Sequence record: KU726251.1 | Reading direction: 5' to 3' (one strand) | DNA: 64,000 bases | Part shown: piece by piece, positions 14,277 through 25,474 of the stretch | How positions within the stretch are numbered: the first letter of the stretch is position 1 | Layout of the letters: every line of letters starts with the position of its first letter | The notes under the pieces: model-generated | Databases searched by the model: none | What the model was told of the DNA's origin: nothing | The model's input: the letters and a program-made list of their open reading frames with translations, nothing else | Made by a program: the position numbers and the translations under genes

Positions 14277-14818
14277 TCGTCCTCCTCAATCAGGCCAAGT
14301 TCTAACAACAAACCGAAGTCCAGCATCTGGAAGTCCTGATCGAGGTTACCGGCCCACAACAGAGAAATGTTGTGTTGCTCTTCTTCTTCCAACTGCGGGA
14401 GCAGGTGTTCTTCGAAGATTTGACGCTCTGTGTAATAAGCGTCAACCGGGTTATTGGAGCGTAAGTTACGAATACGCATCCGCGGGAAAGACAAGCCCAA
14501 AGCCACTAAACTTTCAGGACTGGCTTCATCAATAGAGTGACGTAGCAGTTCGATTTTGTGGCGTGGGTATGCAAGCAGTCGCTTCTCAAAGCCAGGGTTG
14601 CGCTTTTCGATTTCCGCGACAGACTCGTGTCCTTTCTCAACGCAGTAGACCGGGATCATCACATTCAGCCCGTATTTAATCAACAGGCTTTGGATTTCAT
14701 CAGTGAAGTCTTCCCCTGCCACAATTGCGTGCACATTGTACAGCTTGCTTTTGCGCAGGAAGCGATCGACCAAGTGCAGTTTACGCTTCGTAAAATTGTG
14801 AATCAGTATTGACTTCAT
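14252..14818 (-). CDS. Hypothetical protein in the radical SAM cluster (188 aa)
   Basis: ATG 14818 overlaps the end of the rSAM gene. Its stop overlaps the start of the DUF4376 gene. Confidence 0.6.
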   Translation of the reverse strand: MKSILIHNFTKRKLHLVDRFLRKSKLYNVHAIVAGEDFTDEIQSLLIKYGLNVMIPVYCVEKGHESVAEIEKRNPGFEKRLLAYPRHKIELLRHSIDEASPESLVALGLSFPRMRIRNLRSNNPVDAYYTERQIFEEHLLPQLEEEEQHNISLLWAGNLDQDFQMLDFGLLLELGLIEEDECLLLTKA

Positions 14819-16109
14819 TCTGGGCTCCGTTTTGTAATTTTTCTGCTTCAGCACGTTGGCGTACACAACGTGAACAATAGCACATGGATTTATCATGCAA
14901 ATCTGATGCGCGGGTCGTACCAGTTTTCTGATACCAATATTCCGCCGCCATCAGCTTCGCAGTAGTCCAACCACACTGACGACGCTCGGCGTGATACGCT
15001 TTACGGTCTTCCAGTGTACCTTCACCGTTTTCGTACGATGCTGCTGCGCAGCTACCGCAACTGTGTTTCATCGGACACCCTAAACAGGTTTCTGGGTAGT
15101 TGGTGTACTGTGTTTGAATCTCTTCTAACAACTTACCACCGTCCAGGCTCACAAACTCACGACCGACCAGTTCTGCTACAGCAGAACGGGAAGTTACCGT
15201 GGACATGAAACGGTTACAACCGTAAATCTTGCGATCAAAGCCGAGACAGGTCATGTGCGTCAACGTACCGCAGTACGGTTTCAGGCGTTCTGGGTCGAGA
15301 CGAACAGAGTCGTCATGTAAGAGTTTGTCACGCCAATCCGGGTCCCAAGTTGCCATAAAGTTCAGGCCATCCGGGATGATGTGTGTAATCGTGTTACGCG
15401 GGTTGGTGTGCAGACCCTTCTCAATCCAGTAGTCCATCACGTCCATCATCTGGTTCGCGATATCCAACGCCATATGGCGCGGTAGGATATCTTCGTACGT
15501 TACGTTACCAGAAATGGTACCACCGCCGGACATGTCAATTAACGATTTCATGCTGGCGGCATAGTGCGGCAATGTATCGATCGTAAACGTCGCCTTTACG
15601 CCCAGTTCAGCGATGCCAACACTCTTCAGATAATTGTAACCGCGTACCGCAGCTTCGTACGACCCTTCACGCGTCGTGGTAAAGATACGATATTTGTCAT
15701 GGACTTCAGGTAAACCATCGATGGAGACCCCAATAGACAGTTTGTCTTTCCAGCGCTCGATAATTTCTTTGTTCAGCGGACGGTCCAGAAGTGTACCGTT
15801 CGTGGAGATACTGAACATATACGGGCGATTGTGTTCTGCGCATAACTTCTCTGCGGTTTCAAAGGCCGCCAAAAGAAGTTTAGGCTGCATGAACGGCTCA
15901 CCACCGATGATATCGATGATGACCTCAACGTTCGGGATATCTTTATCACGCTCGAAACAAGCGTGGATAAAATCAATCACGTCTGCTACTTTGTTGTTAC
16001 GAGGATATTTACGCTCGTAGCAGTATTCGCAGTCCAGGTTACATGACAGGTTAGTCACAACCTGATACGTGCGTGGTGTGTACTGGATTTGCTGTTCGCT
16101 GTTACTCAT
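14781..16109 (-). CDS. Radical SAM/SPASM peptide maturase, Cys-Xaa3-repeat target type
   Basis: CNLDCEYC (CxxxCxxC), IGGEPF, STNG, SIDG. SPASM-type Cys set YCG..TC..GCNRF..CLGC..SCGSC..QC with a tail ending KLMAAEYWYQK. Confidence 0.9.
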   Translation of the reverse strand: MSNSEQQIQYTPRTYQVVTNLSCNLDCEYCYERKYPRNNKVADVIDFIHACFERDKDIPNVEVIIDIIGGEPFMQPKLLLAAFETAEKLCAEHNRPYMFSISTNGTLLDRPLNKEIIERWKDKLSIGVSIDGLPEVHDKYRIFTTTREGSYEAAVRGYNYLKSVGIAELGVKATFTIDTLPHYAASMKSLIDMSGGGTISGNVTYEDILPRHMALDIANQMMDVMDYWIEKGLHTNPRNTITHIIPDGLNFMATWDPDWRDKLLHDDSVRLDPERLKPYCGTLTHMTCLGFDRKIYGCNRFMSTVTSRSAVAELVGREFVSLDGGKLLEEIQTQYTNYPETCLGCPMKHSCGSCAAASYENGEGTLEDRKAYHAERRQCGWTTAKLMAAEYWYQKTGTTRASDLHDKSMCYCSRCVRQRAEAEKLQNGAQNEVNTDSQFYEA

Positions 16110-17016
16110 TGTTCGCCGCCCGTTTACGCTTAGCAGAAATTACACGGTTGATGTAGTTATACGCATCAACGCCGATAGAACGCGCCAGGCGATTACAGCC
16201 GACTTCCAATATCTCTGGGGCGTTCTGAATTTGCTCCTGCGTACCGTCGGCGTTAAGCCACAGCACTTCACTGCACGTGTTGCACTCGGTATCGAACATT
16301 TTACTGATCGCAAGCCCACATTCAGAATCGTTCTGCATGTTAAGGCGTTCGATATTGTCGAGTATTTTCCAATACCCGTACATGAAGTTCATGACGTGGT
16401 CTGGCGATAACGGTTTCGGCATCATCGCATCAAACAACAACGACACACCACCTGGACGGTAATGATAGATTGCTCGGTGCAGCTCGATGAAATCTTCGTA
16501 CCAGCGTTTATCACCTAACTGGTCACGCGTCATCACACCCCAGGTGTAATAGTTGTCCAGCTCGTACAGCACTTCCAGCGCTTCATGATTACCACCGTTT
16601 ACAAAGTTCATAAACGGACGTTCCGACTTCTTGTAGCCGTCAATGGACACAAAGATAAGGTCGAACTGTTTCAGCAACGGCAGATGTGATTTACGCATCT
16701 TTAAACCGTTGGTGTACATGTGATGACGGAGGTTCGGATGAGACTCCTTTAACTCGTTCACGAAGTCTTCAATCTTGCGCTGCGCTAACAGCGGCTCACC
16801 GCCCGTCCAATGAATCTCACCGATATCCGGATTCTTCTCTAAAATCGAGAGAATCTCTTCACGTTGAAACTCACGAGAAGTATCTTCTCTATCCATGTAA
16901 TAAGCCCCTCCACAGAAGCTACAGTCTAAGTTACACTTAGAAGTTGCGACAACCGACAGAATTGACGGTTTGTCGTACAGTTCAGACGAGATCCTGGATT
17001 CTACTTGATCTGTCAT
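16102..17016 (-). CDS. Second radical SAM enzyme (short C-terminal Cys cluster)
   Basis: CNLDCSFC, TGGEPLL, YTNG, SIDG. C-terminal CNTC...GCNRL. Confidence 0.85.
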   Translation of the reverse strand: MTDQVESRISSELYDKPSILSVVATSKCNLDCSFCGGAYYMDREDTSREFQREEILSILEKNPDIGEIHWTGGEPLLAQRKIEDFVNELKESHPNLRHHMYTNGLKMRKSHLPLLKQFDLIFVSIDGYKKSERPFMNFVNGGNHEALEVLYELDNYYTWGVMTRDQLGDKRWYEDFIELHRAIYHYRPGGVSLLFDAMMPKPLSPDHVMNFMYGYWKILDNIERLNMQNDSECGLAISKMFDTECNTCSEVLWLNADGTQEQIQNAPEILEVGCNRLARSIGVDAYNYINRVISAKRKRAANNE

Positions 17017-17037: not shown

Positions 17038-17925
17038 TTAAATATAATCAATGGCGAATAAAGGATCTTCGTCTACATTAGCGCCGGGCACCAGTAACAT
17101 CGGGTCGTGATAGGCAGCTAAAATTTTGTTCAGGTCGGCGTGTCTTTCGTTCAAGCGTTTCAAATCGGCCAACGTAACCGAACGACTACGAATCTCAGAA
17201 ACAGCTTCTGCTTCTTCTTTCGTTAAATCCACCTTCGTTAAGAGGAAGCTTACCAGCTTACTCAAATCCGCTTCTGTCGCCGGGTAATCCCCATATCGGG
17301 TTTGAACCAGGTGTTGCATCCACGGCTTACGAATACGTTTGGTGATTTCAAAATCGTCAGTCAACGCATACCAGACAGAACGCTTTTTATCCCACACGAA
17401 CTTATAGCTATACGCCATCATGTCCGCTAAACGGGTGATGCCGAGTTCTTTATATCCCTCGATATCGATGTACGGTTCGGTGTCGAAATACGTTTCCGTA
17501 TCGGCAGGTACCAGTACAAAGTAGTAAGGGAACGAGCCCAGATAGTCCGGACTCCACCAACGGCGCGCCATCGGTTTTGCTTCGAGTTCGTCAAACGGTG
17601 TAAACATCAGTTCTAAATCGACACTGTTGTTCAGAATCCCTTCACTGAAGAAATACTTACCGTCAACCAACACGCCGCGAGAGTTACCATCGCCGTTAAA
17701 GATAACGATGGCCTCTGCAACCATATCACGGATCTTAAACGTATTTTCTACGGTGTAGTTCTTCTTGTCGGTCAAGAAGCGACCACGAACCTTTGGCCAC
17801 TCACCAGGAATCTGTGCAATCAGTCTGACTTTGTCAGCGAGGTGTGCACGCACCGAATCTGGGGAAGATAGATGCAGCGGGTGGTTGAATGTGGTTTTAT
17901 ACGCAAGATGCAAATCGTTTTTCAT
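17038..17925 (-). CDS. Hypothetical protein in the radical SAM cluster (295 aa)
   Basis: Long ORF with RBS ggag between the precursors and the rSAM genes. No recognisable motif. Confidence 0.65.
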   Translation of the reverse strand: MKNDLHLAYKTTFNHPLHLSSPDSVRAHLADKVRLIAQIPGEWPKVRGRFLTDKKNYTVENTFKIRDMVAEAIVIFNGDGNSRGVLVDGKYFFSEGILNNSVDLELMFTPFDELEAKPMARRWWSPDYLGSFPYYFVLVPADTETYFDTEPYIDIEGYKELGITRLADMMAYSYKFVWDKKRSVWYALTDDFEITKRIRKPWMQHLVQTRYGDYPATEADLSKLVSFLLTKVDLTKEEAEAVSEIRSRSVTLADLKRLNERHADLNKILAAYHDPMLLVPGANVDEDPLFAIDYI

Positions 17926-17947: not shown

Positions 17948-18154
17948 TTATCGATTCCCCGCTCCACGGCTACAGCTTCCGCTGCAGGACCAGCTACACC
18001 CACCATTACAGTTATAGTGAGAAAGCGGTAAGCCAGCCAGGTTATTTGTGGTCGACACGGTGCCCTGGTTAGCGATATAGTTGTTTGCCTGTGCGGTTGT
18101 AATGTAACCTTCTGCCGTAACGAGACGGTTTCGAATAGTCTTGAGACTGATCAC
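17948..18154 (-). CDS. Cys-Xaa3-repeat peptide 3 (short, 4 Cys)
   Basis: MISLKTIRNRL...SHYNCNGGCSWSCSGSCSRG. Leader homologous to peptides 1 and 2. RBS ggagg. Confidence 0.8.
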   Translation of the reverse strand: MISLKTIRNRLVTAEGYITTAQANNYIANQGTVSTTNNLAGLPLSHYNCNGGCSWSCSGSCSRGAGNR

Positions 18155-18169: not shown

Positions 18170-18574
18170 TTAGGAGTTAGGACCTGAACAACCACCAGAG
18201 CACGCACCTGAGCAGTTTGCGGAGCAGGATTTACCACAACCCCCAGAACAGCTGCCTGTGCACGTGCCGCTACAACCACCAGAGCACGAAGAGCTACAGC
18301 CCGTGCAGCTGCTGCTACAGCCTGATACACAGTTTGCCGAACAAGTCGACCCACAACCGCCCGTAGCAGACCCAGTACATCCGCCAGAACAACTCGAGCA
18401 ACTAAAAGAGCATGTTCCACCACAGTCATAGTGCGAACGACCTTGACCTGCGAACAAGTCAGCGTTATTCGTAGCTTTATTGCGAATGTAGTTTTGCACA
18501 TTCGTGGTATTCTTTAGAGCGTTTGCATCGATCGTGTTTAATCGGTTATTCAGTTCTTTTAATCCAATTGCCAT
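18170..18574 (-). CDS. Cys-Xaa3-repeat peptide 2 (20 Cys), putative rSAM substrate
   Basis: About 50-aa leader, then CGGTCSFSCSSCSGGC... repeats in a Ser/Gly/Thr-rich background. Confidence 0.9.
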   Translation of the reverse strand: MAIGLKELNNRLNTIDANALKNTTNVQNYIRNKATNNADLFAGQGRSHYDCGGTCSFSCSSCSGGCTGSATGGCGSTCSANCVSGCSSSCTGCSSSCSGGCSGTCTGSCSGGCGKSCSANCSGACSGGCSGPNS

Positions 18575-18584
18575 TTAATCCCCC

Positions 18585-18976
18585 TTAGCGACCTGAACAG
18601 CCGCCGGAGCAGGCCCCGGAACAACTGGAAGAACATGAGCCACCGCAACCACCTGTGCAGTTACCGGTACAGCTACTACTGCAACCACCAGAACAACCAG
18701 AGCAACCAGAACAGTTACCGCCACACGTCGAAGAACAGCTACCGATACAAGAAGCAGAACAGCTTCCTGAACAGCTCGAACAGCCATGCGAGCAACCGTT
18801 AGAGCACGTCCAAGAACATGTCCCGCCGCAATCTAGCTGTGTTTTCGTCCAACCCCCAAATCGGTCTGCCGCGTTATGGCTTTAGAGGCCACTTGCGCGT
18901 CGATACGGGGGCCCGTCGCCATGTTAGCTTCGACTATCTGGACGCGGTTTCTGACGTCTTTAATAGATATCGCCAT
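18585..18976 (-). CDS. Cys-Xaa3-repeat peptide 1 (21 Cys), split by a 1-nt frameshift near 18876; not in the ORF track
   Basis: Hand translation: MAISIKDVRNRVQIVEANMATGPRIDAQVASKA / (H)NAADRFGGWTKTQLDCGGTCSWTCSNGCSHGCSSCSGSCSASCIGSCSSTCGGNCSGCSGCSGGCSSSCTGNCTGGCGGSCSSSCSGACSGGCSGR*. RBS aagga. Confidence 0.85.
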
Positions 18977-18998
18977 TACGCTTCCTTAAAAAGTAGAA

Positions 18999-19033
18999 CG
19001 AGCGGACTATGTCCATAAACATAGTCCGGCTCG
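18999..19033 (-). promoter_or_regulatory. Intergenic RNA hairpin (attenuator, processing or stability element)
   Basis: On the - strand gagc-c-ggactatgt-ttatgg-acatagtcc-gctc followed by gttctacttttt, just upstream of the peptide 1 RBS. Confidence 0.55.
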
Positions 19034-19041
19034 TAAACAAG

Positions 19042-20244
19042 TTACTTAGTACCCGCTTCAGCTTGAACATCGTCGCGCGAGGTGAGGTTGTTGTTAACGT
19101 GAACAGCAGCCTGCACAACACCGCCATACTGTTTATGGAGGTAATTCGGGTGTGGGTTATCCGCAGCCGCATGGTTCGCCAGATTCTGGTTTGCCTGCGA
19201 AATTGCGTTGGTGTTGTTTACAACCTGAGTTTTAAGACTGTTGATTTGTCCTTGCAGGTTATCAATTTGCTGTTGGAAGTCTTTGCCCTGATTCTCAAGA
19301 TCCGTGACACGCTGATTTGTTTCATTCAGCGCAGACTGAAGATCGTTAACCTTCTTCTGTAATTGCAACACCAGAGAATTAAGGTTAGCTAATGCTAACG
19401 ACATTTTCTGGTAATTTTGAGCAACTACATTAAGCTGGTCGTTCCACGCGGCTAACGAAGCCACAATTGCATCGATGCGTTGTCCCAACGCCGTGTCTGC
19501 TGCTCTTAAGTCGCCGATATCTCTGATAGTGGCGTCAATGGCAGTCTGTACACTTTGAATCAAAGCACGAATCTCCGTCTCCGTCAGGCCATTAACCTGA
19601 TGAATGTCGAGATTGTGTACGTTACCTTCGGCGTTGATGTGGGTATTTAAGGCATCGAGGAAGTCGTTTTTCAGACCGTCCAGAATACCTTTAATTTCTT
19701 CCAGCTGTACTGCAGAGCCGGAGTTAATCGCATCTTTAATCCCCGCGAGCACGGTAATGATATACTCAAAACCGTAGATATCGCCAAGGTCTTTATACGT
19801 CGGTGCGGACGGGAACGTATCGGGCACGTTTCGAAGATCCTTGAAGTCCACCACACGGTCTTCAATTTTCAACGACGCAATCGCTTGTCGGATGCCTTCG
19901 ACGTTCGCGGACTGAAAACCACCAACGACTTGCGCAGAGACTTCGATATCAGTAGGAATGGCCGAGTTAGTTACCACCACACCCATGACCACTTCGCGGT
20001 TCTTGGTCATTTTCTGATATGCAGTATGTGCAAAAATCAGCTCGTAGTCTGTACCGCGTTTGTACGGGTAGACACCTGGTTTATTCGCAGCCGCCAAGCG
20101 GAAGGTATCCGCGTAGAAAGCTCCGTCAGGAAATGCAAAAGCCCGGTTAACTTTACCAGAACCTAACGTAATACGCCGCGTAACGGCGTTCGACGTTAAT
20201 GTCCCGGTAAGGTCAAGCGGGTACTGATAAATGATTTCGGCCAT
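19042..20244 (-). CDS. Baseplate/fibre-family virion protein with long coiled coil (400 aa)
   Basis: YPLDLTG...N.V N-terminal domain shared with the three upstream giants. HINAEGNVH and DNPHP motifs. Heptad-rich segment. ATG 20244 after ggag. Confidence 0.75.
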   Translation of the reverse strand: MAEIIYQYPLDLTGTLTSNAVTRRITLGSGKVNRAFAFPDGAFYADTFRLAAANKPGVYPYKRGTDYELIFAHTAYQKMTKNREVVMGVVVTNSAIPTDIEVSAQVVGGFQSANVEGIRQAIASLKIEDRVVDFKDLRNVPDTFPSAPTYKDLGDIYGFEYIITVLAGIKDAINSGSAVQLEEIKGILDGLKNDFLDALNTHINAEGNVHNLDIHQVNGLTETEIRALIQSVQTAIDATIRDIGDLRAADTALGQRIDAIVASLAAWNDQLNVVAQNYQKMSLALANLNSLVLQLQKKVNDLQSALNETNQRVTDLENQGKDFQQQIDNLQGQINSLKTQVVNNTNAISQANQNLANHAAADNPHPNYLHKQYGGVVQAAVHVNNNLTSRDDVQAEAGTK

Positions 20245-20291
20245 TGCCAAACTCCTTTGATTGGGGCTTCCTTGCCCCATAGCGCCATCTG

Positions 20292-23200
20292 TTAGGTACG
20301 GAACATAAGATTGACCTGGATAACATCAGGCTGTTGACGTCCTCTCTCGTTCACCCAATCATGCGCAATCGTTAACGTAAGATTATCGCCATCCCACGAC
20401 ATGATCGGCGGTGGGAATAAACCCTGAGCACCTGTGGTAACAACCGGGATTGCACCTGCCACATTCGTAAACGTATAGCTACGACTGTTCAGAACAACCG
20501 GTGTGCCGTGGGTCTCTCCCGGATGTGGTAAGATTTGAATCTTACTATCCGAGAGATCGGTGGTGATTGGTAGCCCCCCAGCGTCCGTGAAAAGCCAAGA
20601 GCAAATATGCTGGTTAGCAGTTTCGAGCGCTGAAGAACTTACCGCCGCGACAAATGTAAAGGTGCACGGCACGCCTGCTGGCAGAGAGTGCTGTTTGTGG
20701 TGCACGGTGTGTGGTGACGGCAATAACACTTCTGGATTTTCATCAATGTTAACATCCGTACCTTCCGCTTCGACGTTGTAGAAAAAGCCATCCACCGCCT
20801 CCCATGGGGCAACGTGGACATTAAAGGTCGTTTCTACTCCCGGTGTACCTGGGACGACGAATTTACTTTGCACCACCACCATCAGGTTTGTTGAGGTCGG
20901 AGCGAAAGCGGGCGTTGGAATACCTACCCACTCCATACCCAATGATGTCGCTTCACTGTTCTCATCGGCCGTTACCGTCGCAATTGTTGTAGGATGTTTC
21001 CAAAACGCCCCCGACTTGTTTGCCTGAGTAAACGCCGGCAAAGTTTTCAAGCCTTCGAAACGTTTAGACACCATCGCTTTACCGCGACGCTGTGCGTCAG
21101 ATACAGTATAAAGCAACTGACTATCCAGATAGCCTTTCGTAGCATCGACTGACAAAGGACCCATCGCTTCTTTACGCAATGGTGCCAGTCTGCCCGTTGC
21201 TGCATCCCTTCCCACTTCCACATCATGCTTATTCTCAACTGCCGCATGTTCCAACAGCTGTTTTACCGCCCCCAATCGCTTAGCATGGTCGACGTTAGTC
21301 TCGACGACTCGCGACGAGCCCGTTTTAACATACCCGATGTAGAGTTCCGTTTCGGTGTCTGGATGTTGAACCACGTCCATTACGTACTTCGGTGTACCAT
21401 TTTCTACCTTGGCGTGCAGGTAAAATGTCCGGTTCTGATGGTTTGTTGGAAATGCTTCGCTGAGGTCAATATACCACGTAGGCAGCTTATAAGTGTTCGA
21501 GCCGAAACGCAGGTTAACTTCCTCAGTCACATATACCAGCCAACCTTCGGCTGTTTCCACACCAGCAATGACGACCGATTCAGTCGGGCCGCTAAAATTA
21601 GGAGTCGCGACAAAATCTCTCGACGACATTGCGATACCACCACAATAGACGTAGTCGAGAGATGAGTTGTGTAGCATCACCTGATCACGATGAGCCAGAT
21701 AAGCTGGGCTGACTGGAGTGTGTGATGGTGCCATGCGTCCAATGCCGCGCGGGGCAGAAGAACGCGTCCAGGTACCATTAGACAGCGTAAGACCGACACC
21801 GTAGTTAAGCGCACCCAAGTCGCCAATTTGGCGCAAGGTTAACGTGTGTGGAAGATACAACCCGAACTGCGTACCATCTACCGACACCATGGTAGGTTGT
21901 CCCGGCCGGCGTGTTTTTCCTCCCGTTATCTCTCCCAACGTAGCATAGTTCAAGCCGTAGTCGAGGTTGTTATAGAAGTCAAACAGTGCCAATATCGCTG
22001 CGGGGAATGTTACCTGCCCGTTGCTGATTGTTGGTTTCAGTGTAAAGTAGTAGATATCTAACAAGTTAACATTGTTCACAGTACGTGTACATGCTACTTG
22101 TGCTAATGTGAGCGGTGTGGCCGTTCCGATGCCGATGAACCAAACGGAAAACAATGCCTTTCCTGCGTTATTTGCAGCAAGGATAAATTCCGAAGCATAA
22201 CCATTCGCAGCGCCTGCCGGTGCTCCGTCGATGATCATCTGCTTCATCTTATCCCATTCAGCTTGTGACAGCGTCAATCGATCGGCATGAATCGTGAAAG
22301 TGCCGGAAACGTTGTGGTAAGGGAATGTTTCTGGTCCTGTGCAATACCAGCCGTTTAACTCTGTACCAGGCGACGCCGGTGTAACAATGTGGCACATCTG
22401 CGACAGATTCTCATACGTGATAGAATCTACTACACGACGATTGTTAGTTGGGCCATACCCCGCCTTACCTGAGTAAGTGGTGTTCGGATCAAACTCAACT
22501 TCAATTGCCAAGCGGGAACGCGGCTGTGACAACCAGATAAGTCTGGAATTCGCTCCCAGAGTCAGCGGATACGCCATACCCAGCTCGTAGATAGAACCAC
22601 GTCCTTGGTTTAACATTACCGCACTAAAACTTCTGGCAGTGAAGTTGTAGTCGCACGACAGGTACTCGTACCAACTCACACCGTCATCTAACGTTGTAAT
22701 CGTGACATAAGGCATTAGGTCGCGATCGCCTGCATGTCCTTGCGAAACGATATACTTGTCTTGCGATGTTGCAAAGGTTCGGTTATTAGCTTGACCTTCG
22801 CCCCACTTCCGGCTCGGAATCCCAATCTCAGCGCCGCCGTTATAACGAACCGTGGTAAGATCGGCCACGATAGGGAATCGATCGGCACCTTCCAGCGTTA
22901 CCGTCATTGAACTGCAATCAACAACAAAGCTTGACACCCATTGTTTAAAGTTAATAGTTTGCCCTGTAGTAGAAGCAAACCAGACTGTTGGCGTTAAACC
23001 AACACGAAAGTTCAGCCCATCCACAGCAATCGCGTGATTACATTCCGGACCATGGACGAAATTTCGCGCACTATTCCACTTCGCCGATGCGTCTGCGTAG
23101 ATTTGTGTTACTGGCGCTACCAACACATCTGTATCAGAACGTTTCTGACCCTGACGCAAGTAGATATTATCTCCCGACGTTAACATCCCACCTGTTAACA

Positions 23201-25474
23201 CATCCGCCACAAACGTGTTGCTACCACCCAGATTAAGTTCGTTGAGTGCGATGCTACGCATACTCACGAAATAGTCACCGGAGGTAAGGACAGTACGGAG
23301 CAGATAAACCCGATCGTTGCAAACGATCAAATCGTTTGTTGACGGATCGGCAACCCATGGTGCGGTTGTAATCACACCGGCCGCGTTACCATTTCGGTAA
23401 TCGCCCAAGTAAACTTTAACAACACGATGATGTTTTGCATGGTCAATGGTGCCGTCAAAGATGACCAGATAATACGCATAGTCACTGCCTAAGCAGATCA
23501 TTGCATCTGTACCGGTAATCAGAATAGCAACCAGATTCACCCCAGGATACGCCGACATTCCAGCGGGGTGATAACGTACGGACGTCTGCTGCATATTTTC
23601 CAGCGTATTGCTTGGCGACACATCAGCATAGGCGTAATAGATAGCCAGTCACCTGGCGGGTTCCCGTTGGAACCATTGCGCAACGAGTAAACCTTACCAG
23701 CCTCGTAACGCGCCAGTCCTTTTTGCCAGGTTTGGTTTTTGGTGTACCCTTCGTAGTTCCCCTGGACAGGTATAGGCAAGAAGTTATTGTTGCCGTACGA
23801 TGATCCGCCAACGGTCCATGCTGGCAACAACGTAGCAATCTTGTCGTTCAGTGTACCGATCTTCTGTTCGAGCAAGAAACCCTGGCGGGCAGTAACCATC
23901 TTATCTGTTGTGGTGTCAATAGCATCCCACAATTTAGCCAAACCTGTAACAGACGTGGATGCGTACGGTACGTTATCGAGATCAGCAATGGTGTGGGTGT
24001 GTGTTGAGAGTGCCTTGCCTGATAGCACGGTGCGCAACGCATTAGTAACCGGTTTCTCCAGCGGTCCGGTATTGTTCATCTTCTCAATACCGAAATCCGA
24101 CGCGGTTAATGTTAAATGCATTTGACCGTTTTCGTCTAACACAAACCCTTTACCATTGACCGTATACGTGTCGTCCACATATCCGTCTAGTTTGTTCTTC
24201 AAGTCAGTAACAGCTTTTTGGGAAATCGCTGTGGACGCTGCAGCGGACGCCGAAAGGTTAGTAATCGCAAACAAACCCTGCACAGTTGTGGTTGCTGCAG
24301 GCAGTTCCGCATTCATGTAAACTTTGTTTGTTTCTTTACCAGAGCCGTAAATCTTCAACGTGTCGCTGGACTTGAAGTAGGCGTTTGCTGGAAGTATCTT
24401 CACCGAGGTCAAGTACATCTTAACCATATCCGGTGTAACGAGATAGACGCTGTTATACACAGGCGCAAGCACACCTGCATCATAAGCGCCCCACTTGTCA
24501 CCTGCTTTACCCGAGTGAACCCAAAGCGTGTTCAGACCAGCACTGAACTCCGTAGCGATACCCGGTTCGTTGTTATCCTGGTCAGCTTTTAATACCAGCG
24601 GTTTTGTCGAGGTGATGATGAACTTCTCACCCTTCATGCTGATAACGTGACCAGACGTTGTTTGGAACGTAATCGCGTCGTTATTCAGAACACGCATACG
24701 GCCCAGTAAATCACCCAGGGTATTATCCAGAAGCATGTCAACGTGTTTCTGTTGGATGCCGCTGGTAGACATTAACGTCACTAGCTCTGCCAGGGTACGT
24801 CCGAATGCCTTAGTCGCATCTACGGCTTTGCCGAGTACCGGGAGAGCGCCAATGTCACCGCAGGTGTAACCATGTGCATTTTTAATCAGGTGGTGTTGAT
24901 ACATTTCGTCATCAAACACCTGCTTACCGTTCTGATAAATCAAATCGGTAACTTCGGCAAAAGCCTCATCCAGCTCGTGGGCGCGCTCTAAAATACCCAG
25001 ACGGATATCTTCCAACGCCTTTACGATTTCATCGCGAAGAATCGCTTCTTCGAGGTCTTTTGGCGGGTCGATTGGCGAGATAATCGGCGGATATTTCATC
25101 AGCTCAGACCAATCGCAGTTACGCGGGTCTTTCATATCTGTCTTAACCAGATACTTGCCGATTTCAGAAGCAGGGATGCGATACTGTCGACCAACCGACA
25201 GTAACTCGTATTCTACCTCTGTGGCGTTCAGCAGCATTATGCTGCCGTATATTGCATCGTTCTCAGCCTCGGCTAATTCCTGGAAGTAATGTCCTAAGAA
25301 ATAATCAAGACCTTCTATTAACTTGCGTTTAGTTCCGGTTGTTTTATCGGTAACGGTTAACGTTAACCCGATGCGATAGAACGGTGCTTCGACGGGAATG
25401 ACCGCCGAATAACGGTTCGGGTAAGTAGCGGTACTGAGCGTACCGTTAAACTGCGCCGCATCTTCTCTCGGCAT
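20292..25474 (-). CDS. Long tail fibre/baseplate protein (~1730 aa), split by a 1-nt frameshift at ~23645
   Basis: ORFs 23537..25519 and 20292..23621 join as GDW-AIYYAYADVSPSN if one G is restored. Fibre repeats (ATTTVQG, HTHTIADL, ASTSVTGLAKL). ATG 25474 after aggag. Confidence 0.75.

Follow-up and report, generated by a model that had tools for sequence, protein, structure and literature searches.

pep3 is a real protein-coding gene, the most upstream of three paralogues for cysteine-repeat proteins, which has been split by a likely error in the sequence record. It lies on the minus strand at positions 18585-18976 of the window, i.e. the whole stretch of 64,000 nucleotides analysed here, and reads there as two pieces in frames offset by -1. 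The 5' piece (18833..18976) begins with an ATG at 18976, four nucleotides downstream of the ribosome binding site AAGGAAG (18981..18987, minus strand), and runs for 47 codons to a premature TAG at 18835-18833. The 3' piece (18585..18881), which is open in the -1 frame from 18881 to a TAA at 18587-18585, contains 21 cysteines and begins with H-N-A-A-D-R-F-G-G-W-T-K-T-Q-L-D-C-G-G-T-C-S-W-T-C. This start includes a junction motif, N-A-A-D-R-F-G-G...C-G-G-T-C-S-W-T-C, which is followed by Cys-x-x-x repeats. Coordinates, translation and cysteine count given in a preliminary description of this DNA were all found in the sequence.

Comparison with related phages supports the view taken in that description that the two pieces are one gene. 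The window showed a 100% match to record KU726251 of phage SEGD1, a Seoulvirus jumbo phage of Salmonella, and was matched by 35 other phage records. Between window positions 17900 and 19100, phage SPN3US is 99.6% identical and one base longer, and the extra base aligns in a C run at 18878-18879 of the minus strand (GG on the plus strand), where the window reads CC and SPN3US, EC001 and other relatives have CCC. With this base, SPN3US carries an uninterrupted 130-codon ORF with which both pieces are collinear, exactly the 130-residue gene that had been predicted to result from one additional base in the CC run. Intact relatives match the 5' piece over its first 33 codons only. The additional C together with an intact ORF of 127-131 residues and 21 cysteines was found in all 32 other sequences checked, namely 14 records of Seoulvirus, among them the divergent STsAS and SPAsTU (78% DNA identity), five phages from another four genera (Huxley, Asesino, CR5, Kwan and Phobos, each with 21 cysteines), four IMG/VR jumbo-phage contigs and nine further assemblies bearing an identical radical SAM gene. 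Among these 33 sequences, the window alone has a broken copy. The concern, voiced in the preliminary description, that relatives might likewise be devoid of an intact ORF was dispelled by this result.

The pattern of substitutions indicates that selection acts on the Cys frame of pep3, as judged from the comparison of SPN3US with STsAS. The 390-nucleotide gene differs between these phages at 90 sites, which distribute as 14, 8 and 68 over the three codon positions of the Cys frame and correspond to 66 synonymous and 24 non-synonymous changes. In the Cys part, 45 synonymous changes stand against 4 non-synonymous ones (pN/pS 0.028), compared with a pN/pS of 0.29 in the N-terminal part. Protein identity amounts to 115 of 130 residues in the Cys frame versus 59/129 and 58/129 in the two alternative frames.

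The break itself is very likely a sequencing or assembly error in the SEGD1 record. Along its entire 64 kb, the window shares 98.93% identity with SPN3US and differs from it by 21 single-base indels, in 18 of which the window is the sequence short of a base; 13 of these 18 deletions fall within G or C runs that are two to four bases long. Both SPN3US and EC001 carry the base missing from the window at all but a few sites that could not be aligned locally. When the window was mapped onto the SPN3US annotation, nine of its 66 annotated genes turned out to be frameshifted, with SPN3US 0168, 0171, 0172, 0181, 0201 (twice), 0203, 0205, 0206 and 0212 as their homologues and with the shifts at window positions 23645, 33893, 34837, 41356, 51555, 52203, 54128, 55564, 56473 and 60556. 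SPN3US and EC001 are intact at these ten gene-breaking sites. One of the broken genes, on the minus strand at 20292..25474, is the homologue of the SPN3US tail protein gp168, which is frameshifted by the missing base at 23645. In SPN3US, amber mutants showed that the phage cannot do without the tail genes gp171 and gp203, and the same is expected of the tail protein gp168 (PMC5105663); gp168, gp171, gp172 and gp203 are all contained in purified virions (PMC5694885, Suppl. Table 1). Taken together, such breaks are incompatible with a plaque-forming phage, so that the SEGD1 record has to be considered unreliable at runs of this kind. According to a published comparison, the SEGD1 genome was deposited only, without further characterisation (PMC6614189). 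As the break in pep3 is one of a systematic set of missing bases, a record error is its likely cause.

Two other causes of the break were considered. The missing base could be real, which would make pep3 a fresh pseudogene of the SEGD1 isolate that is tolerated thanks to pep2 and pep1. The deposited sequence is indeed broken, the two paralogues could cover the function of pep3 and nothing supports pep3 being essential; nevertheless, a real mutation appears improbable in view of the 17 other single-base deletions in the same record, some of them in essential tail or virion genes, of relatives that are without these deletions at every locally alignable site, and of the 32 intact sequences among 32. 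Far less probable still, to the point of being negligible, is a programmed -1 ribosomal frameshift at T-TTG-GGG (18856-18850), by which a full-length protein with eight altered residues would be made. Read in the frame of the ATG, this heptamer formally agrees with X XXY YYZ; it is located just before the TAG, and a -1 slip on it would enter the Cys frame. However, one frame is open throughout in each of the 32 other sequences, where no shift is needed, and the match is incidental because the same bases serve in all relatives as ordinary in-frame codons for R-F-G-G. To our knowledge, T TTG GGG is also not among the heptamers that are efficient in bacteria.

As had been anticipated, pep3 escapes automated annotation almost everywhere. 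Three of the six reading frames are free of stop codons in its Cys core. The SEGD1 annotation places wrong-frame coding sequences over pep3 (SEGD1_gp170) and pep2 (SEGD1_gp169), SPN3US has a wrong-frame coding sequence (SPN3US_0166) over pep2 and none over pep3, and the Huxley record has opposite-strand ORFs over these genes. None of the three genes is annotated in SPLA, MET_P1 and Proteus phage 7, the last having only a short opposite-strand coding sequence there, and ten independent assemblies show no gene call over pep3. EC001 and Lh1B, the only two GenBank records with pep3, list all three genes as hypothetical proteins. For the small radical SAM gene of the same module, SEGD1 gp167 and SPN3US 0164 start at an internal methionine (residue 41, 795 nucleotides), a late start that removes the motif CNLDCSFC; EC001 has the full ORF of 915 nucleotides. 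In sum, the SEGD1 annotation of this stretch comprises two wrong-frame coding sequences, one missing gene and one radical SAM gene that was started late. This blind spot is common to almost every record of the phage group, some members of which have been studied for Salmonella control.

A fault of a different kind was noticed in LR535901 of Salmonella phage SPFM1, which consists of 60-nucleotide blocks that are each in forward orientation and are arranged in reversed order, like the reversed lines of a file. Proteins called from this record are chimeric. Other SPFM records match the window in 13-19 pieces and probably share this block fault; the radical SAM proteins of SPFM8, 9, 15 and 20 are for this reason probably chimeric as well. 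The phage radical SAM protein is furthermore indexed in 931 blocks of public assemblies. Many of the respective contigs are about 240 kb long and belong to isolate assemblies named Salmonella enterica or Escherichia coli, which suggests that the phage is often co-sequenced with its hosts, be it by a carrier state, pseudolysogeny or contamination.

Downstream of pep3, the minus strand carries its two paralogues. The intact pep2 (18170..18574) encodes 134 residues with 20 cysteines, and the short pep1 (17948..18154), which starts with GTG after a GGAGG, encodes 68 residues with 4 cysteines. Homology of pep3 to pep2 was rightly recognised in the preliminary description: the intact SPN3US allele of pep3 shows about 52% identity over its full length with this 134-residue neighbour. 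In each family member, about 50 helical residues at the N-terminus precede a conserved junction, N-A-x-x-[LF]-x-G ... C-x-G-x-C-S-W-x-C, which leads into a run of C-[S/T]-G-x units. The repeat is regular: successive cysteines are four residues apart in 207 of 245 intervals and three apart in 32 of 245, the repeat unit is C-[S/T]-G-[G/S/T] and cysteine accounts for about 25% of the repeat residues. The Cys part has at most one lysine or arginine, and neither aspartate nor glutamate was present in the Cys part of any of eight jumbo-phage peptides examined.

Profile searches placed pep1, pep2 and the intact pep3 allele in phrog_6085, which they match along their whole length (E-values 3e-24 to 3e-41). 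Their scores against TIGR04114, an NCBIfam profile for a Cys-rich repeat that is described as a target of radical SAM enzymes, are 19.6 bits for intact SPN3US pep3, 17.1 for pep2 and 13.7 for pep1, and all stay below its cut-off of 20; a related fibre protein from a non-jumbo locus (L027) reaches 25.9 bits. A Pfam search gave no match for the three peptides or for the 295-residue protein encoded next to them. With a pLDDT of 44, the AlphaFold2 model of pep2 was of no practical use. Compared by BLAST with all ORFs of the window, the N-terminal parts of pep1, pep2 and pep3 gave no significant match outside the family, and hence no sign of an attachment domain shared with gp167-170. By exact look-up in a collection of 15 billion proteins, pep1 was found on 230 contigs, and the pep2 and pep3 sequences were absent; this absence carries little weight since the identical pep2 protein annotated in EC001 is absent, too. 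Other members of the pep1 cluster proved to be unrelated proteins. A scan for promoters and terminators around the three genes yielded nothing convincing. By eye, an imperfect inverted repeat (GGACTATG ... CATAGTCC) was seen on the minus strand at window 19000-19035, between the stop codon of the gp167 homologue and the ribosome binding site of pep3; it falls outside the rule of the terminator scan.

Three further genes on the minus strand complete the module. The most distal one (14781..16109) encodes a radical SAM/SPASM-type enzyme of 442 residues with the motif CNLDCEYC and conserved C-terminal cysteines. C23, C27 and C30 of its CX3CX2C motif are invariant across 18 homologues, and so are C280, C298, C342, C345, C351, C354 and C379. 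The enzyme hence combines the cluster motif with the C-terminal set of cysteines expected for a SPASM protein, and cluster binding is predicted. Its best NCBIfam match is TIGR04115, the profile of a CXXX-repeat-target maturase, with 125.6 bits, short of the cut-off of 350, and its distant relatives score 132-157 bits against this profile. The profile of the ranthipeptide maturase PapB (NF047865) aligns over residues 22-357 and gives 113.6 bits, below the cut-off of 340; against TIGR04463 only 57.6 bits were obtained. The radical SAM motif begins at residue 23, and the alignments enter profiles of RRE-bearing families at positions 85-106; from this early position of the motif we conclude that the enzyme is without an N-terminal RRE-type domain.

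The second gene (16102..17016) encodes a small radical SAM protein of 304 residues with CNLDCSFC at residues 28-35, and the third (17038..17925) a protein of 295 residues belonging to phrog_8030. Even in distant phages, the latter gene always has the Cys-repeat gene or genes on one side and the radical SAM genes on the other. A fairly confident model of the 295-residue protein (pLDDT 79.9) shows curved beta-sheets and a C-terminal helical bundle; a fold search with it found no match in the PDB and only its own orthologue in BFVD. As its fold resembles none that is known, it may be a new type of recognition protein. Profile searches of all module neighbours gave no match to any peptidase, transporter or exporter, or RRE family.

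The module, made up of the three Cys-repeat genes, then the 295-residue gene and lastly both radical SAM genes, is embedded among virion genes. Its upstream neighbour (19042..20280, minus strand) encodes a 412-residue homologue of SPN3US gp167, a coiled-coil protein that belongs to the non-head proteins of the virion; beyond it lies the gene for the very large gp168 homologue. Each of the five jumbo-phage genera has the complete module after gp167 and gp168, both of which are virion proteins. Outside the jumbo phages, the nearest relatives of the enzyme (34-39% identity) are likewise encoded in phage tail modules. Here, the repeats are carried by true fibre proteins with H-x-H-D-x-R-Y-Y-T-E fibre repeats or collagen-like stretches. 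The fibre proteins of loci L026, L027 and L029 have the junction motif, for example A-T-N-A-D-Q-L-G-G-Q-A-G-S-Y-Y-R-C-S-D-C-S-W-T-C, followed by Cys repeats at their C-terminal ends. In the non-jumbo loci, the gene after the fibre encodes a homologue of the 295-residue protein (E-values 1e-9 and 6e-8) and is followed by homologues of both enzymes.

One of these loci, L026, is a prophage-like tail module in a bacterial genome, that of Deferribacter abyssi (GCA_049472655.1, JAQNCS010000009.1, 82416-91573). It encodes, in this order, a GpJ-like tail protein, a 302-residue fibre protein with H-x-H fibre repeats and, at its end, 29 cysteines of CXXX repeats, the homologue of the 295-residue protein and a pair of radical SAM proteins. 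Among records that bear the name of a bacterium, this one has the homologue closest to the phage enzyme (38% identity).

The same arrangement is widespread among viral contigs. When IMG/VR was scanned with an enzyme alignment, 80 loci were obtained, and in 78 of them an ORF with a cysteine at every fourth position lies beside the enzyme gene on the same strand. These ORFs span 40-931 residues and have up to 92 cysteines. N-terminal parts matching tail-fibre proteins were detected in L034 (2e-40), L035 (PF12571, 1.8e-40) and L037 (1e-31), and the C-terminal parts of the fibre fusions match phrog_6085. The proteins of L026, L027, L029, L034, L035, L037 and L038 are tail-fibre proteins that end in the repeat domain and share the junction motif; the fusions are 258-568 residues long. 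Some of the IMG/VR Cys-repeat proteins have a different, unannotated N-terminal part. In one Cys-repeat protein that is encoded beside a related radical SAM enzyme (L104:2672-3733), the repeats are followed by C-F-P-E-G-T-R-V-L, which looks like the start of a self-cleaving domain of the Hint or intein type.

For the short jumbo-phage proteins, fusion of this kind is evidence of a link to fibres and not proof of it. The published SPN3US virion proteome lists gp167-173 and none of gp161-166, and the three peptides were not in the annotation that was used (PMC5694885). These proteomic data cannot decide the matter, as the database did not include the peptides and trypsin would leave the Cys repeat nearly uncut.

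From its sequence and gene context, pep3 is likely to encode a radical SAM substrate, perhaps one placed on fibres. The proteins encoded by pep1, pep2 and pep3 would serve as substrates for both radical SAM enzymes, whose genes lie three genes downstream. In the proposed mechanism, Fe-S clusters and SAM would enable the 442-residue SPASM-type enzyme to abstract a hydrogen and join the sulfur of a cysteine to a carbon of a neighbouring residue, and the resulting thioether, of the sactionine or ranthionine type, would be formed many times along the repeat. Thioether chemistry is suggested by the nearest characterised relatives of the SPASM enzyme, which carry out such reactions, and serine, threonine or glycine are candidate acceptors because the Cys part has no acidic residue. 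Possible partners are the small radical SAM protein and the protein of 295 residues, which may contribute a second modification, substrate delivery or fibre assembly. More speculatively, the cross-linked products might be attached to tail fibres or form part of them instead of being freed as peptides. Such a placement is proposed because the module resides in a fibre gene cluster and the same repeat domain is fused to the C-termini of tail-fibre proteins. As a tentative proposal, in which we place less than even confidence, the Cys-x-x-x domain would be a module of receptor-binding fibres that the paired radical SAM enzymes stitch into a covalently cross-linked rod or tip while the virion is being assembled.

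Alternatively, the three proteins could be classical RiPP precursors whose leader is cut off and whose cross-linked Cys core is freed at lysis, with no role in the virion. Their genes are small, the N-terminal part is more variable and the Cys part highly conserved (pN/pS 0.29 vs 0.028), the best matches of the adjoining SPASM-type enzyme are peptide maturases, and an N-terminal helix motif, [IL]-K-x-x-x-x-R, recurs in many distant Cys-repeat proteins. Against this stand a module in which no protease, exporter or RRE was found by our searches, an enzyme without the N-terminal domain of RRE-bearing maturases, the position inside a tail-fibre cluster in five phage genera and the fusion of the same domain to tail-fibre proteins of 258-568 residues elsewhere. 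We therefore regard release as a free peptide as rather doubtful, and lean slightly towards products that are parts of the virion. The same fusions bear on the term "precursor peptide" of the preliminary description: the gene it referred to was confirmed, and its status as a precursor is an interpretation, given that the repeat domain is elsewhere the C-terminal end of long tail-fibre proteins and the N-terminal part of pep3 may consequently not be a leader that is cut off. It is also conceivable that the repeats stay unmodified and bind metal, in a metallothionein-like manner or as Fe-S clusters, or form disulfide ladders, while the enzymes act elsewhere. A cysteine content of about 25% in the repeat would suit such a role; yet 78 of the 80 viral contigs with this enzyme clade, which come from very different phages, have a Cys-repeat ORF beside it, a pattern that is hard to explain without a substrate relationship, and Cys-rich peptides and proteins are the targets of related enzyme families (PMC13692751). 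We consider unmodified repeats to have only a slim chance of being correct, and favour the radical SAM substrates proposed above.

The break in pep3 itself is ordinary, a flaw of a record; the class of Cys-repeat proteins paired with radical SAM enzymes in fibre modules seems to be unstudied. If the enzymes do cross-link fibre proteins, this would be a new kind of virion maturation with a bearing on fibre stability and host recognition. It would likewise provide a new setting for the thioether chemistry of radical SAM enzymes on proteins, which was only just shown in an archaeon, and would constitute a RiPP-type modification of a structural protein of viruses that is widespread (78/80) and hidden by wrong-frame or skipped gene calls. 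Searches of the literature on SPN3US, on CXXX-repeat/TIGR04115 systems and on radical SAM enzymes with phage fibre or Cys-rich proteins found no study of the system, and the link to tail fibres was not found reported there. Nor did the literature searched contain an experimental study of a TIGR04114/TIGR04115 system or of the phage clade. The family phrog_6085 is without functional annotation and names a sequence class only.

Among known systems, the archaeal pair CrpA/CrpC of Methanococcus voltae (TIGR04463) resembles the phage module in that a SPASM radical SAM enzyme acts, or in the phages would act, on a repeat-rich, Cys-rich protein instead of a short peptide. In the archaeon, ranthionine cross-links are introduced into a Cys-rich protein of 28.8 kDa, and paralogous substrates share their N-terminal part (PMC13692751). 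In contrast to the phage system, CrpA/CrpC has a 17-residue repeat with C-x-x-Q/D and an RRE in CrpC, is archaeal and cellular without a link to virions, and its enzyme belongs to a different family. PapB, the maturase of freyrasin (NF047865), is the best or second-best profile for the phage enzyme clade (113-163 bits, cut-off 340). As for PapB, the phage substrate has repeated Cys motifs and the enzyme no long N-terminal extension. PapB is reported to link cysteine to aspartate or glutamate in C-x-x-x-D/E motifs (PMC9413430). Unlike its substrate, the phage repeats have no acidic residue and are devoid of this acceptor motif.

The closest resemblance is to TIGR04114/TIGR04115 (Pfam PF27846), a family described in silico, in which a cysteine likewise occurs at every fourth residue and a SPASM-type radical SAM enzyme is encoded alongside; one viral fibre protein related to the phage family even matches PF27846. 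The phage proteins differ in scoring below the cut-offs (125.6 vs 350 for the enzyme, 13.7-19.6 vs 20 for the peptides), in the addition of a smaller radical SAM protein and a conserved partner of 250-295 residues, and in their location in tail-fibre modules, where the repeats often form the end of a fibre protein. Judged by these sequence features, the phages possess a divergent variant of the CXXX-repeat radical SAM target family, which has so far been defined in silico.
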